64,000 nt of DNA from sequence record OR532817.1; one strand, 5' to 3'. Below the pieces are notes generated by a model. The model was given only the letters and a program-made list of their open reading frames with translations. It had not been told where the DNA came from and made no database searches. This document shows positions 572 through 31,768 of this stretch, piece by piece. A program made the position numbers and the translations under genes. How positions within the stretch are numbered: position 1 is the first letter of the stretch; each line of letters starts with the position of its first letter.

Positions 572-968
572 ATGTTATATTGTTATTCGTAATGATTTGG
601 ATATGCCAGAAGGTAAATTTGGTGCACAAATCGGCCATGGCATCGACGCAGTATGGAAAGAGGTTTTGGTAGCCGGTACAATGGTGCGTGCTGCAAATAT
701 AGCCAATGAACAACCAAAAGAGCGTGATATCAAAATACAGGATGAAATTTCTAAATGGGTGAGTGACGGTAGTAGAAAGATTATTCTAAAAACAAAATCA
801 GAAGACGAATTACTGAAAATTTATAAAAAGGTATTGTCTGAAGGTTGTATTTGTACTAAAATTTATGATTATGGATTTAATTTTTTTGATGGTTTAACTT
901 TAACTGGTATTGTTGTACATCCATGTTCAGAAGAAATTAAAACATTAAAACGAGTACGCTTATGGTAA
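549..968 (+). CDS. peptidyl-tRNA hydrolase, PTH2 family
   Basis: YIVIRNDLDMPEGKFGAQIGH, W..DG.RKIILK..SEDELL, IYDYG and C-terminal RLW match the PTH2 pattern. Confidence 0.85.
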   Translation: MKMNSPSKCYIVIRNDLDMPEGKFGAQIGHGIDAVWKEVLVAGTMVRAANIANEQPKERDIKIQDEISKWVSDGSRKIILKTKSEDELLKIYKKVLSEGCICTKIYDYGFNFFDGLTLTGIVVHPCSEEIKTLKRVRLW

Positions 969-4634: not shown

Positions 4635-5998
4635 AATAAAACTAATTTATACCACTGGTAATACATTCGAAACATGTGAAGTAGAAAGATTTATTAATTG
4701 CGAATGGGATACAGAAGAGAAAGCTATTCATGAAATGAATAAAATCCGAGAGCACTGGATTTTCAATAAAAAAATTAGTTCTACTCGTGATAAAGACACA
4801 AAGAAGAAATTGGTATCACAAGCTATTATGCAATCATGGTATAAACCTGGTAATTCTGAATATACTATGTTGCTAGTTGATAATGATGGAAATTCTTTTG
4901 AAATGTATGCTGCATGGTTAGGGTATTTTGAAATTCTTCACAGTACTGAAGTAGTCAATGCAAACCAATTAGACAACTATATTGATTTCGATGAATTAAG
5001 ATCAAATATGGGATTGTGGTAATGGATGGTCCAACTGTACTAAAAATCCTTCGTAAATTTAAACACCCAATGTTGTTCGGACGTTGGAAATCGTTAAAAG
5101 AAAATAAAAATACCGACGATCAAAAAAATATCAATTATAGATGGTATTGGGATTATTCAAAAGATTATGGTGATTCACTTTGTATAAAAATTAAATTCAA
5201 TAATTATAATAAATGGTCTAGAGATAAAAAATACATATATTCATATGATATTCACTTATCAAAGGAACATGTATTTATTTTTCATAGAAGTTACAACAAA
5301 TTTTCATTGAAACATGATGTACTATTTTCTATAAATGAATTATATGAAGATTTAGAAAGTGTATTATTTCAGCAATCATTATTGACTTCTACTGGTATGG
5401 TGAGTACTCAAGAAATTGAAGTAATAAGAGAATTAAAAGATATATATTTTTCAAAGGAGAAATGATGGGTTACGGTATTCAATATAAATGTAATGATGGT
5501 AAGGACTATTATTGTACTAGTTCTTCATTTGTAACTTTTAGTGAAAATATTGAAAGTATAGCAGAATTTGCACAACAAAAAACTGCATTAAAAATAGCCA
5601 AAGGATTTACAAAATCAACTGATATGGAAGCTGAATTTGGTGAAGGTAAATTGTTTGTTATTAAAGTGGTGAAAGTTCCACTTCAAATAGAAGAAGTACA
5701 ATTAGTAAAATTAAAACCCGGCTACCGAATTTATTCTGAAGAGGAAGAAGAATATTACAAAGGTAGTAAAAAATCAACAAAACGTTTTGGATATCACAAT
5801 AATTTTGATGAATTACATTGCAGTACTGTGTTTAAAACAGAAAAAGAAGCACAAAAAACAATTGATGCAATTCTTGATGATTATCATAGTTATGCATATA
5901 AGTATGACCCTAGTGATAAACAGTATGAACAACATGTCAAATCTTATGAACCATATTATCTAATGGCAAAAAAATTAAAAATTGTTTATATTGAATAA
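4627..5998 (+). other. three translationally coupled hypothetical CDS (4627..5022, 5016..5465 FQxS family, 5462..5998)
   Basis: Overlapping start/stop codons; ESVLFQQSLL in the second. Confidence 0.65.
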
Positions 5999-11779: not shown

Positions 11780-11998
11780 ATATGCATGTAAAAATTAACC
11801 CAGAAAAGAACTTTTATAATGAAGTATTCGGTTCTGAAGATTTAGTACGTCATTTTCCTGAATTAGAAACAACTGGCGTCGAAGTTTATTATGATGGTGA
11901 CTTGTATCATATCATTAAAGATGGTAAACTAGCTGGAGATTGCTGTTTCTTTGATGAAGAAGAAATGGAACATCTTACCATTCTATAAATAAAAAAAT

Positions 11999-12485
11999 GG
12001 AGGCGACTGTATTCAGTACTGAATCAATTGATCGTTGCGTAATCAGATTCAGTTAGCGTAGTATTAGCTGGGACGCGTACTTGTGAGCCGCAACCACAAT
12101 GTACTTAAAATCCAACGCGTGGAGGGTAAGCATTCTGTACTGAATAGCAGAAGGGCTACAAAAACTTATACTTCAAAAAGGTTCGGGAAGTATTCGTAAT
12201 AAACCGTTTAATCGTCTTATCAGTACTATGAACAACCAATATATTTGTGGTGGATATTATTGGACTCAAGTAGATGATATTATCTTTGTACGCTTTCTAA
12301 CCAAAAGGTCAGATAATAAAAATGTAAGAAAATTTCAGTACTGATAGCTGGAACCTTACTATAGCAAAAAGACCTGATATGACTCGCTTAGGTCTTTAAA
12401 TTATATAATGCGAGGGACGCTACGCCTTAGTTTAGGGCTAAATCGTAAGGATTGCGTACTAAACCGCCTTGAGAGTCCCAAGGCA
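11999..12485 (+). ncRNA. candidate ~490-nt structured ncRNA
   Basis: No ORF; about 10 helices (e.g. AAAGACCT/AGGTCTTT, CCAATA/TATTGG, ATACTTC/GAAGTAT, AGGCG/CGCCT). Confidence 0.55.
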
Positions 12486-12600
12486 ACTTTTAATTAAAAT
12501 AAATTTGGACAAAACACAAAAAGGTGATATAATGATTCTATCTGAAGAAGATTGGGGTGTTTATCCTAAAGACGAATTTGATGGATTTTAATAAAAAATC

Positions 12601-12630
12601 TTGAACAAAAACAAAATAATGTGATATAAT
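12601..12630 (+). promoter_or_regulatory. extended -10 promoter for ncRNA
   Basis: TTGAAC ... TG-A-TATAAT. Confidence 0.65.
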
Positions 12631-12634
12631 ATTA

Positions 12635-12772
12635 GTACTGAATGAGGATAGGTGCAGTTGGTGAGATACCGCATGAGAAATCATAGACACCATAGACACC
12701 GTAGAAAGCGAAGGGCTTGGTGAGCGACGGCAATAGACAAGCATAGTAGAGGCTTGAAGAACTCATTAGTAC
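12635..12772 (+). ncRNA. structured ncRNA, paralog A
   Basis: Closing stem GTACT(G)AATGAG/CTCATTAGTAC starts at the expected TSS and is followed by a T-run; core shared with 13373..13472. Confidence 0.65.
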
Positions 12773-12878
12773 TTTTTTTAATTTAAAGAATTATGCACTA
12801 GTTGTTTTAAATCAGTAAAACACCGAAGATGTAAGTACTATGTAGTATGTCAAAATCAAATACAATAAGAGTATACAT

Positions 12879-13352
12879 ATGAAAGTCGAATTGGGAAGTA
12901 CTATCAAAGCAGGTTATACTGTTTCAGTTACAACGTGGGAAAATGATGCAGATAATTATCAAACAAATGACATTGTAGGCTTATCTAAAGAAGATGCCAA
13001 AATGTTTATTGATACTTTACCCATTTTTAAATCCGTTTATAGTAAAAAGAAAGGTCTTGGAAACAAAGAACTTAATATTAACCAGTACTTGGGTAAGTTC
13101 GAAGACCTAATCAATAACAATATTATCACAGTGTCATTTGCTGAAAAATATTTTGGTTATATTAACCCAAATAGTGATTATGATGAAGATGAACAACAAG
13201 ACACGATTATTGAAGCATTGTCTGAAATTCTAGGATATCCAGTTGAATACGATTATGGTTTTATCAGAGTCGTTGAAAAAGTTCAAGTACTCTACTTCGA
13301 TGAAGATACTGTAATTCCTTCAGGTTCGAAAGTAGACACCAGTACTTTATAA
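12879..13352 (+). CDS. hypothetical phage protein
   Basis: 157-aa ORF, TWENDADNY motif. Confidence 0.65.
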   Translation: MKVELGSTIKAGYTVSVTTWENDADNYQTNDIVGLSKEDAKMFIDTLPIFKSVYSKKKGLGNKELNINQYLGKFEDLINNNIITVSFAEKYFGYINPNSDYDEDEQQDTIIEALSEILGYPVEYDYGFIRVVEKVQVLYFDEDTVIPSGSKVDTSTL

Positions 13353-13372
13353 CATATAAAATACAGAACAAA

Positions 13373-13472
13373 TACTGAATGAGGATAGGTCATTGTGACC
13401 GGATGAAGTGAAAGGCTTGGTGAGCGACGGCAAAACCCAACCGTAGTAGAAGCTCTAGGAACTCATTCAGTA
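13373..13472 (+). ncRNA. structured ncRNA, paralog B
   Basis: Perfect 11-bp closing stem TACTGAATGAG/CTCATTCAGTA; core GGCTTGGTGAGCGACGGCAA shared with paralog A. Confidence 0.65.
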
Positions 13473-13493: not shown

Positions 13494-13581
13494 GGCCGTA
13501 TGTCCAAATTGGTAAAGGAGACAGACTTAAAATCTGTTGGTGATATTCACCTTCTCGATTCGAGTTCGAGTGCGGCTACCA
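13494..13581 (+). tRNA. tRNA-Leu(UAA)
   Basis: Cloverleaf with long variable arm, ACAGA-CTTAAAA-TCTGT, TTCGAG T-loop, encoded CCA. Confidence 0.92.
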
Positions 13582-13610: not shown

Positions 13611-13934
13611 ATGTGTACTGAAGCAAGAAGATATGTTTATATTTTGGTTCGCAAAGATTTAGAACTAAAGGATATTATTGTTCAAACTGCTCATGCTTCA
13701 TATGAAAGTGCAAAAGAATTTAAAAATAATGCTGATAGAACATCTATTATAGTTTTAGAAGTCAAGGACTTATACAAACTAAATGATGCTAAAAGTTATT
13801 TAAATTCTAATGGCATTAATTGGACTGTGTATACTGAAAAATCTTTAGGATTTGGAGAAACTGCTATCAGTACTGAAGCACTCAATAACGAACAACGCAA
13901 AACTATGCGTAAGTTCCAATTATTGAAAATATAA
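13611..13934 (+). CDS. second PTH2-superfamily protein
   Basis: YILVRKDL..IIVQTAHASYE, IIVLEV, G.GETAIST, C-terminal FQLL. Confidence 0.7.
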   Translation: MCTEARRYVYILVRKDLELKDIIVQTAHASYESAKEFKNNADRTSIIVLEVKDLYKLNDAKSYLNSNGINWTVYTEKSLGFGETAISTEALNNEQRKTMRKFQLLKI

Positions 13935-16217: not shown

Positions 16218-16528
16218 GGCCCCTTAGCTCACGCTTTGGTTAGAGCAGACGACTCATCGATAAATGGTGACTTTCACAAGTAATTGTGATTGAAAAACTG
16301 GATGAATTCAGGGAAACCTTAACACATAATGGTGATGGCAATCCTGAGCCAAGCCCAATAAGCGTATTGGGAAGGTGCAGAGACTAGGTGGTTCAGCACG
16401 ATCTTGCTGTGTAATACACCAATAGCGTCCGGCATCCTTATAGGATGATGATATAGTCCTTTCTATAATGAAAATTATAGGTAAAAAGAATCGTTTGGTA
16501 CTGTGTTCGACTCACAGAGGGGCCACCA
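16218..16528 (+). tRNA. tRNA-Ile2(CAU), intron-containing (exons 16218..16257 and 16489..16528)
   Basis: Joined exons give GGCCCCTTAGCTC...GACGA-CTCATAA-TCGTT...AGGGGCCACCA, closely resembling E. coli ileX. Confidence 0.9.
16258..16488 (+). mobile_element. group I intron (IC3-like), 231 nt, no ORF
   Basis: Core AATTCAGGGAAAC, AATCCTGAGCCAA, GTGCAGAGACT, GATATAGTCC; 5' exon ends in U, intron ends in G; GUGA can pair with exon UCAU giving the U.G splice-site wobble. Confidence 0.92.
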
Positions 16529-31687: not shown

Positions 31688-31768
31688 AAGACGGTAGCTC
31701 AAGGGAGAGCAGCAGGCAATAACGATAAGTTCACCTGTCAGCGTGGATTAAAACACCACCCGTCGTCA
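31688..31768 (+). ncRNA. tRNA-like RNA with 17-nt anticodon loop
   Basis: GACGG/CCGTC, D arm GCTC-AAGGGA-GAGC, GCAGG/CCTGT, GTGG/CCAC T-like arm. Confidence 0.55.

Follow-up and report, generated by a model that had tools for sequence, protein, structure and literature searches.

Phage T4 encodes the closest described parallels to the elements reported here. Its RNAC and RNAD (species 1 and 2) are small stable RNAs of 139 and 119 nucleotides (nt) that lie within the transfer RNA (tRNA) cluster, are co-transcribed with the tRNAs and have roles that are still unknown (PMC3014915, PMC9697503). A related setting is found in Klebsiella phage RCIP0023 (OR532817.1), a 350-kb RaK2-like jumbo myovirus (Alcyoneusvirus) of ~31% G+C, from which we analyzed a stretch of 64 kb (the window; record position minus 62000 gives window position). 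Two copies of an RNA, termed copy A and copy B, stand at the head of the phage tRNA region, in and after an 890-nt stretch without an annotated gene (11989-12878). Copies A and B are real, structured, non-coding RNA genes on the plus strand, and they are diverged paralogues. Judged by comparison with related phages, they belong to a new, previously undescribed RNA family with a narrow distribution and solid comparative support.

The original prediction, made from the letters of the window, had placed a pair of RNAs of 138 and 100 nt here on the basis of shared motifs, and both are found where it put them. The 17-nt 5' motif TACTGAATGAGGATAGG occurs exactly twice in the 64 kb (12636 and 13373), as does the 20-nt motif GGCTTGGTGAGCGACGGCAA (12714 and 13414; 0.00 occurrences expected from shuffles), and the 3' ends of both copies read TAGTAGA(G/A)GCT..GAACTCATT(C)AGTA. 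Covariance models bear out the lengths, giving 136 nt for copy A (138 nt if two bases ahead of its T-run are included) and 100 nt for copy B. The copies, their promoter-like sequences and their structural elements (P, paired; J, junction strand), the latter taken from alignment A7 of 11 distinct sequences in six lineages, are as follows.

12601..12630, plus strand: sigma-70-type promoter sequence of copy A, TTGAAC-18-TATAAT with a TG extension, 5-6 nt ahead of copy A
12636..12771, plus strand: copy A, A-type RNA, 136 nt (covariance models, 66-96 bits)
12636-12646 with 12762-12771, plus strand: P1 of copy A
12647-12650, plus strand: J1/2 of copy A, GATA
12651-12654 with 12697-12700, plus strand: P2 of copy A, enclosing a 42-nt insertion (12655-12696)
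12701-12714, plus strand: J2/3 of copy A
12715-12720 with 12737-12742, plus strand: P3 of copy A, with the P3 loop at 12721-12736
12743-12761, plus strand: J3/1 of copy A
12772..12779, plus strand: C and seven T, directly 3' of P1 of copy A
13333..13362, plus strand: weaker promoter-like site, TAGACA-18-TAAAAT, ending 10 nt ahead of copy B
13373..13472, plus strand: copy B, B-type RNA, 100 nt (covariance models, 114-132 bits)
13373-13383 with 13462-13472, plus strand: P1 of copy B
13384-13387, plus strand: J1/2 of copy B
13388-13392 with 13396-13400, plus strand: P2 of copy B
13401-13414, plus strand: J2/3 of copy B
13415-13420 with 13437-13442, plus strand: P3 of copy B, with the P3 loop at 13421-13436
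13443-13461, plus strand: J3/1 of copy B

All members of the family fit one three-way junction in alignment A7. The two ends of the RNA meet in the terminal stem P1, of 8-11 base pairs (bp); P2 is a short hairpin beginning GG(U/C); and P3 is a hairpin of 5-6 bp with a loop of 15-16 nt. The sequences of P1 and P3 are wholly different among lineages (P3 reads, for example, GCUUG/CAAGC, GUGUG/CACAU, UCACU/AGUGA or UUAUA/UAUAA), and P2 and P3 are free to vary in both sequence and length, P2 accommodating the 42-nt insertion of the A-type. Compensatory two-sided changes occur in 16 of the 22 pairs (P1 8/11, P2 2/5, P3 6/6). Standard pairs fill 93.6% of cells in this alignment, whose fitting to the model favours structure, compared with 75% in shuffles, of which 0/500 equal it; a control in which the partners are slid by 1-3 columns leaves 22-35% paired. 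RNAalifold independently predicts P1, P2 and P3. Five pair positions include G-U or U-G; read from the opposite strand these would be A-C mismatches, which identifies the plus strand as the folded one. Single-sequence minimum free energy (MFE) z-scores are unimpressive (copy A -1.4, copy B -2.3), and the case is built on covariation instead. Additional contacts were tried and rejected. An extra helix P4 (AAGC/GCUU), the pairs flanking a GAA/AGUA S-turn and a pseudoknot between the P3 loop and J3/1 all come without two-sided change, the S-turn pairs being also broken by the sequence of the Logan contig L045, and P2-P3 loop-loop kissing has no consistent register.

No reading frame is open across all lineages. 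Every plus-strand frame contains stops, and coding on the minus strand is rejected in the same way, no minus frame being open throughout. GenBank/RefSeq annotations place 'hypothetical protein' coding sequences across or against the RNA in K64-1 (L006 2959-3045, 3168-3239), 7t3 (L003 4931-5128), PHA46 (L015 1464-1595) and Kaldavass (L091 1102-1380); given that no frame is conserved, these small coding sequences are almost certainly spurious. The proposal that the two copies are paralogous structured non-coding RNAs is upheld by the compensatory changes across six lineages, by the same helices in RNAalifold and by the absence of a conserved frame.

The pattern of conservation places the core of the RNA at the junction. 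Across the family, 33 columns of the alignment are invariant, nearly all of them in purine-rich junction strands that read GGA(U/A)A between P1 and P2, CCGnAnnAAGn(G/U)AA between P2 and P3 and AGUAGA(G/A)GCUnnA(G/A)GAAC between P3 and P1. Outside these constant strands, variation affects the loop of P3 and the loop or insertion of P2. In the enterobacterial lineages the P3 loop is near-invariant, UGAGCGACGGCAA(U/A)A(G/C/A), with variation in the last three bases only; in distant members it is replaced, by GAGAAUGCAAAACUU in L045 and by UUCAUCUAUAGGGAAC in Erwinia phage Kaldavass and contig L058. P3 covaries completely and its loop is replaced in these members; what the whole family shares as its core is the three junction strands. 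On either side of P3, the invariant GAA and AGUA match the sequence of a loop-E/bulged-G (sarcin-ricin type) module, a module that we can only infer because its flanking pairs are lost in L045.

The original prediction is therefore partly supported, being right in kind with the conserved core misplaced. Half of its invariant core, GGCTTGGTGAGCGACGGCAA, corresponds to the P3 helix and its 16-nt apical loop, which distant members have replaced. Its statement that only peripheral hairpins differ between the copies does not hold. Copy A carries a 42-nt P2-loop insertion that copy B does not, a standard C-G pair in its P3 corresponds to mismatched C-C in copy B, three of the six bases opposite the shared GCTTGG strand of P3 differ, and so do ~11 junction bases. 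Within the A-type insertion, RCIP0023 has a 9-nt tandem duplication, without which the insertion occurs in K64-1, Muenster and RaK2.

The claim that copy A starts where its own promoter would initiate and ends at a T-run agrees with the layout of the locus, the start predicted from TTGAAC-18-TATAAT falling on the first bases of P1. The arrangement TGTGATATAAT-ATTAG/ATTAT also lies ahead of the RNA in RaK2, L046, L045, 7t3 and L007, and the distance from promoter to RNA is fixed in five lineages. The run of T at 12772-12779 is likely an intrinsic termination point for which P1 would provide the terminator stem; a simple terminator scan leaves it uncalled, P1 being the closing helix of a multibranch fold. 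In copy A, copy B and 7t3 alike, P1 gives way to a run of 4-7 U. A strong run (T7) is found behind copy A only, which is also the sole copy without a following tRNA. That copy A stands alone in both respects points to two routes to a defined 3' end and thus to a discrete molecule acting in trans, as opposed to a regulator of a downstream element. Copy B may also be transcribed by read-through from upstream.

The following features lie between and behind the two copies.

12879..13352, plus strand: open reading frame (ORF) of 157 aa, PHROG 2290, between copies A and B
13494..13581, plus strand: tRNA-Leu(UAA), beginning 21 nt past copy B
13611-13934, plus strand: short ORF for a PTH2-type peptidyl-tRNA hydrolase (Pfam PF01981, 26.9 bits, cut-off 23), directly after tRNA-Leu

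Downstream of the RNA copies the order is tRNA-Leu, the PTH2 gene, tRNA-Gly, tRNA-Arg, two tRNA-Ser, an intron-split tRNA-Met and tRNA-Asn. The ORF at 12879-13352 is missing from RaK2 and L046, each of which has a single RNA copy. As a carrier of the RNA elsewhere the PHROG 2290 ORF was rejected, its sole distant homologue lying in a non-tRNA context without an RNA match. Muenster and Munch have an HNH endonuclease gene in place of the PTH2 ORF after tRNA-Leu. The tRNA-Met(CAU) gene (16218-16528, plus strand) carries a group I intron, ~230 nt long, that interrupts its anticodon loop behind CAT (Rfam Intron_gpI, 104 bits, 16232-16480); ARAGORN misses this split gene, whose ortholog is intronless in RaK2 (L004 5554-5631) and L046.

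As the original prediction had suggested by way of a check, phage and metagenome data were searched with covariance models, in three rounds (R1-R3) that followed BLAST and pattern scans. Homologues were found in six lineages of RaK2-related jumbo phages (Klebsiella A-/B-type, the RaK2 hybrid, Salmonella, two uncultured contigs and Erwinia), with the following members.

A-type: RCIP0023, K64-1, Muenster and KP13-7
B-type: RCIP0023, K64-1, Muenster and KP13-7; also the sole copy in Logan contig L046, directly behind the 'A' promoter
RaK2: a single hybrid copy, A-like 5' and B-like 3' of the shared P3 region, without the ORF at 12879-13352
Salmonella phages 7t3 and SE_PL: one copy
L007 (same phage as L020), a 360-kb uncultured contig: one copy
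L045, a Logan contig: reached through its PTH2 homologue, 62% identical
Erwinia phage Kaldavass and the near-identical IMG/VR contig L058: one copy

A pattern scan of 185,579 bacterial and archaeal genomes gave nine chance matches and zero model matches, and blastn gave zero matches in E. coli genomes. In viral contigs, the pattern combining the P3 loop with J3/1 recovered RaK2 and L007 only, plus high-GC chance matches; in metagenome contigs, it gave one true match, to the same phage as L007. Two other junction patterns produced chance matches in coding sequence only, except for L058. A weak match in L057 (20.8 bits) was rejected, lying inside a 1353-aa ORF. In phage PA5oct, neither ncRNA001 and ncRNA002, which are defined by RNA sequencing (RNA-seq), nor the first 40 kb of the genome matched. 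CBB, GAP32 and fHe-Yen9-04 have homologous arrays without the RNA.

Loss is also seen among near relatives. Munch, PHA46 and fENko-Kae01, which are near 7t3, have the same promoter followed by a hairpin of only 24-26 nt, the core having been deleted. This hairpin is a P1 remnant of 8 bp, TATCAGGAC(A/G)GTAAGATATTCTGGTA, in which wobble pairs are compensated (L014 ~1517-1542, L013, L015); its loop is 2 nt shorter in PHA46. XbC2 is without the RNA and without one tRNA-like gene in a region ~94% identical to Kaldavass/L058, and the edges of this indel are similar tRNA 3' ends. Such patchy presence, with loss in near relatives, marks the RNA as dispensable and often lost, like accessory genes. Gene order suggests a history in which an ancestral B-type RNA lay beside tRNA-Leu in Alcyoneusvirus, the A-type RNA and the ORF then entered between B and the promoter, and a later recombination in RaK2 joined A to B within their common P3 region. 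Fold, strand, conservation pattern, gene order and the pattern of presence and absence are matters of observation.

In all six lineages the RNA lies within a tRNA array. Its 3' end is 21 nt ahead of tRNA-Leu in RCIP0023, RaK2, Muenster and L046, 8 nt ahead of tRNA-Tyr in L045 and ~8 nt ahead of a conserved tRNA-like RNA, itself before tRNA-Leu, in 7t3 and L007. In Kaldavass/L058 the RNA abuts the 3' end of tRNA-Ser(UGA), internal to the array. The tRNA-like RNA also occurs in the window at ~31692-31768 (plus strand), as well as at L003 ~5084-5165 and in L007 and L013-L015. Its stem GACGG/CCGTC resembles an acceptor and TAGCTCAAGGGAGAGC a D-arm, while the anticodon-like loop is enlarged and the T-arm is atypical. 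The versions in the Klebsiella phages and in L007 are 94-95% identical, its end stem covaries (GTTGAG/CTCAAC), and neither ARAGORN nor Rfam calls it. A long conserved hairpin, GGAATCCAACAGCAAT ... ATGGATTCC (with AGAATC variants), stands beside tRNA genes in L003 (~5160-5225), L007, L045 (6140-6195) and L058 and may be a processing or termination signal of tRNA arrays. In Kaldavass and XbC2, the 'tRNA-Lys' measures 122 nt and has an insertion of ~45 nt after the anticodon-stem region (L058 ~640-760, minus strand; L091 1237-1358).

We tentatively read the family, at somewhat less than an even chance, as a stable structured RNA with an accessory role in trans, one that tRNA processing or, for copy A, termination sets free and whose junction binds a protein or small ligand. 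Host RNA polymerase would transcribe the RNA from its own strong extended -10 promoter or within a tRNA transcript. The tRNA-processing machinery would then make the ends, by RNase P at the downstream tRNA and by tRNA 3' trimming upstream, such that an RNase P cut at the 5' end of tRNA-Leu(UAA) would free copy B with a short trailer; the end of copy A would be made instead by termination at the T-run after P1. Once released, the RNA would act in trans as a discrete folded molecule, whose conserved junction would offer a protein or small ligand a surface or pocket to bind. How the RNA is transcribed and processed, how stable it is and what it may bind are inferences. The function should be accessory rather than essential, since near relatives lost the RNA, and it probably concerns translation or tRNA biology, or else phage-host conflict.

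Several points weigh against this interpretation. We found no RNA-seq study of an Alcyoneusvirus in the literature. Only six lineages are known, so some of the apparent conservation may be shared ancestry. The RNase P, exonuclease-trimming and T-run termination steps are deduced from gene order only. Finally, Munch-type phages keep the 5' hairpin after loss of the core, which shows that at least P1 may also work purely in cis, as a protective 5' stem-loop of the tRNA transcript.

That last observation leads to an explanation we consider unlikely, namely that the RNA is a cis-acting leader of the tRNA operon, a 5' structure that stabilizes, guides or paces processing of the precursor and is functionless once released. 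Such a leader would suit the tRNA or tRNA-like genes that always adjoin the RNA, the exact coincidence of RNA and transcription start in five lineages and the compensated 8-bp hairpin kept at the same site in Munch-type phages. However, copy A is parted from the tRNA by a T-run and an ORF, the RNA of Kaldavass/L058 lies between tRNAs rather than at a 5' terminus, relatives express the same tRNAs without the RNA, and a simple protective hairpin has no need of ~33 invariant junction nucleotides. The architecture could also be that of a riboswitch-like aptamer, whose junction would bind a metabolite or signalling nucleotide while P1 and the U-run act as a ligand-stabilized terminator controlling read-through. 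A junction closed by P1 at the 5' end of the transcript, with conserved unpaired purines and variable stems, is typical of aptamers, and U-runs of 4-7 do lie behind P1 in copy A, copy B and 7t3. We nevertheless rate this as improbable, because what lies downstream is heterogeneous (tRNA-Leu, tRNA-Tyr, a tRNA-like RNA or one unrelated ORF), no alternative antiterminator pairing is evident, the RNA sits inside the tRNA array in Kaldavass/L058 and zero Rfam riboswitch models score, even weakly.

A base-pairing regulatory RNA would place the function in the 16-nt GC-rich apical loop of P3, UGAGCGACGGCAAUAG, as a seed for host or phage RNA, with the rest as scaffold. The loop is identical in Klebsiella A and B, 7t3 and L007 though the stem beneath it covaries, its G+C content (8/12 in GAGCGACGGCAA) is host-like in contrast to the 31% of the phage, and copy A ends in a stem and U-run as Hfq-type small RNAs do. 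Yet the loop is swapped in L045 and Kaldavass/L058 while the junction strands persist, zero loop-complementary sites (<=3 mismatches) occur elsewhere in the window, and the loop itself has no complementarity of >=9 nt to E. coli ribosomal RNA (rRNA) or tRNA-Glu, the sole antisense 9-mer to reach it (7t3) straddling the boundary of P3 stem and loop at chance level; we therefore regard this explanation as decidedly unlikely. A new class of self-cleaving ribozyme, excising itself from the polycistronic tRNA transcript, is quite improbable. Small ribozymes are known to have a reservoir in phage genomes, and a small three-way junction with a conserved core inside transcripts that need cleavage would be a natural form for one; against this, the hammerhead, twister, twister-sister, pistol, hatchet and HDV-like models are unmatched, and RNase P and the tRNA 3' processing enzymes would already account for the RNA ends. 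The hammerhead in particular was rejected: the junction strands (4, 14 and 19 nt) misfit its core CUGANGA / GAA / UH, with ~7, 3 and 1 nt, and CUGAAUGA of the Klebsiella P1 is base-paired, and missing in 7t3 and L007. Highly improbable, in our judgment, is a passenger of tRNA arrays, decaying or selfish and without function for the phage, whose spread and loss would be due to recombination between tRNA genes. The patchy distribution, the XbC2 indel between similar tRNA 3' ends with joint loss of RNA and tRNA-like gene, and the recombination between copies in RaK2 are what a passenger would leave, but compensatory changes preserve the helices, the junction is kept where the surrounding DNA is ~70% identical or unalignable, and the promoter is held at a fixed distance.

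The window holds further repeated or structured elements. A possible third small RNA lies in the same intergenic region (12410-12492, plus strand), ~80 nt long and G+C-rich, downstream of TATAAT and ending in the sole terminator-like hairpin called on the plus strand (12466-12484, then a T-run). This candidate is kept in RaK2 and L046, is without an Rfam match and has an MFE z-score of only -0.4. The sequence TTGACTTCGGTCA occurs five times on the plus strand (39228, 42400, 45445, 49605 and 60241) and is probably a common UUCG-loop terminator hairpin. The palindrome AGTACT occurs 210 times in 64 kb, ~10x expectation; the counts for other AT-rich 6-mer palindromes are 5-40. There are 61 sites of CAGTACTG (116x expectation) and 100 of GTACTGAA, with 2.2 expected. 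The sites lie on both strands (58/42) and also within ORFs, and their enrichment in 7t3, L007, CBB and GAP32 (loci L003, L007, L016 and L017) marks a clade-wide signal at the DNA level. The motif opens P1 in the Klebsiella-phage RNA copies, but not in the 7t3 and L007 copies.

Comparison with known RNAs agrees with the original assignment to no known family. Against Rfam 15 (4227 models), neither copy has a match at the gathering threshold or at E<=10, and the L045, 7t3 and L058 homologues give nothing, or unrelated chance matches that differ each time. Like 5S rRNA, the phage RNA is a three-way junction of ~100-120 nt whose stem is closed by its 5' and 3' ends, and the GAA and AGUA strands in one arm could adopt a loop-E/bulged-G module. 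Unlike 5S rRNA, it leaves RF00001 unmatched at E<=10 and has junction strands far longer than loop A; the one 9-mer in common with E. coli rrfB, in copy B only, is at chance level. The pRNA of phi29 is likewise a phage-encoded three-way junction of ~120 nt with a terminal stem formed from both ends and early transcription, but the Rfam pRNA model is unmatched and there is no consistent complementarity of the P2 and P3 loops for ring formation. RaK2-like myoviruses use a terminase, not a pRNA motor.

The L1 stalk of 23S rRNA offers a lead, not membership. AGGAUA, extra U included, is exactly the first T-loop (T-loop 1) of the stalk, part of a double T-loop module that docks the tRNA elbow and whose unpaired strands hold six near-invariant residues, AGNNA ... 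UGNNA (PMC3664808). Positions 2113-2136 of E. coli 23S are UAGGAUAGGUGGGAGGCUUUGAAG, and the phage RNA has GGAUAGGU(G) at J1/2-P2 and GAGGCUUGAAG in J3/1 (23S 2115-2136), with an association with tRNA that L1-stalk T-loop modules share. The two blocks are contiguous in 23S but ~70 nt apart in the phage RNA, and GGCUU pairs in the opposite direction in helix 78. In the phage RNA the A of AGGAUA is engaged in P1, in a pair that covaries (A-U in 8 sequences, G-C in 3), so that the 5' closing A conserved in T-loop 1 is lost. The sequence signature of the double T-loop class fails on this pairing and on copy B, which has UAGGA rather than UGNNA; an alternative T-loop, AGAAA in J2/3, changes to AUGAA in copy B and to AAUAA in L045. 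Apart from these two blocks, only 9-10-mers at chance level are common to the RNA and rRNA, and mimicry of or antisense to rRNA was rejected. We regard it as a long shot that the conserved junction is a tRNA-docking or uL1-binding module convergent with the L1 stalk; if it were, a free-standing phage RNA would grip tRNA elbows or sequester uL1, for example to shield or sort phage tRNAs or to tune host translation. The RNA could also be a 'sponge' aptamer for a defence signalling nucleotide, an idea equally open.

The nearest analogy is with RNAC and RNAD of T4, through a common setting rather than through sequence or fold. Both phages carry a pair of RNAs in the tRNA cluster, the T4 sizes are near those of copies A and B, and co-transcription with tRNAs is presumed here. 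Models R1-R3, however, match nothing in the T4 tRNA region at 66-76 kb, and rnaC ends in a tRNA-like T-arm and acceptor GGGTTCGAATCCC, whereas the phage RNA has no T-arm-like GGTTCGAATCC. The family, a candidate for Rfam, brings advantages for study in its clean, covariation-backed fold, its junction resembling a binding site and its natural pair of paralogues, and sister phages supply natural knock-outs (Munch versus 7t3, XbC2 versus Kaldavass). The role of tRNA-cluster RNAs in phages thereby becomes testable in Klebsiella, Salmonella and Erwinia systems. Species 1 and 2 of T4 are unexplained after fifty years, and the RNA described here gives them an unrelated second example from a phage tRNA cluster.

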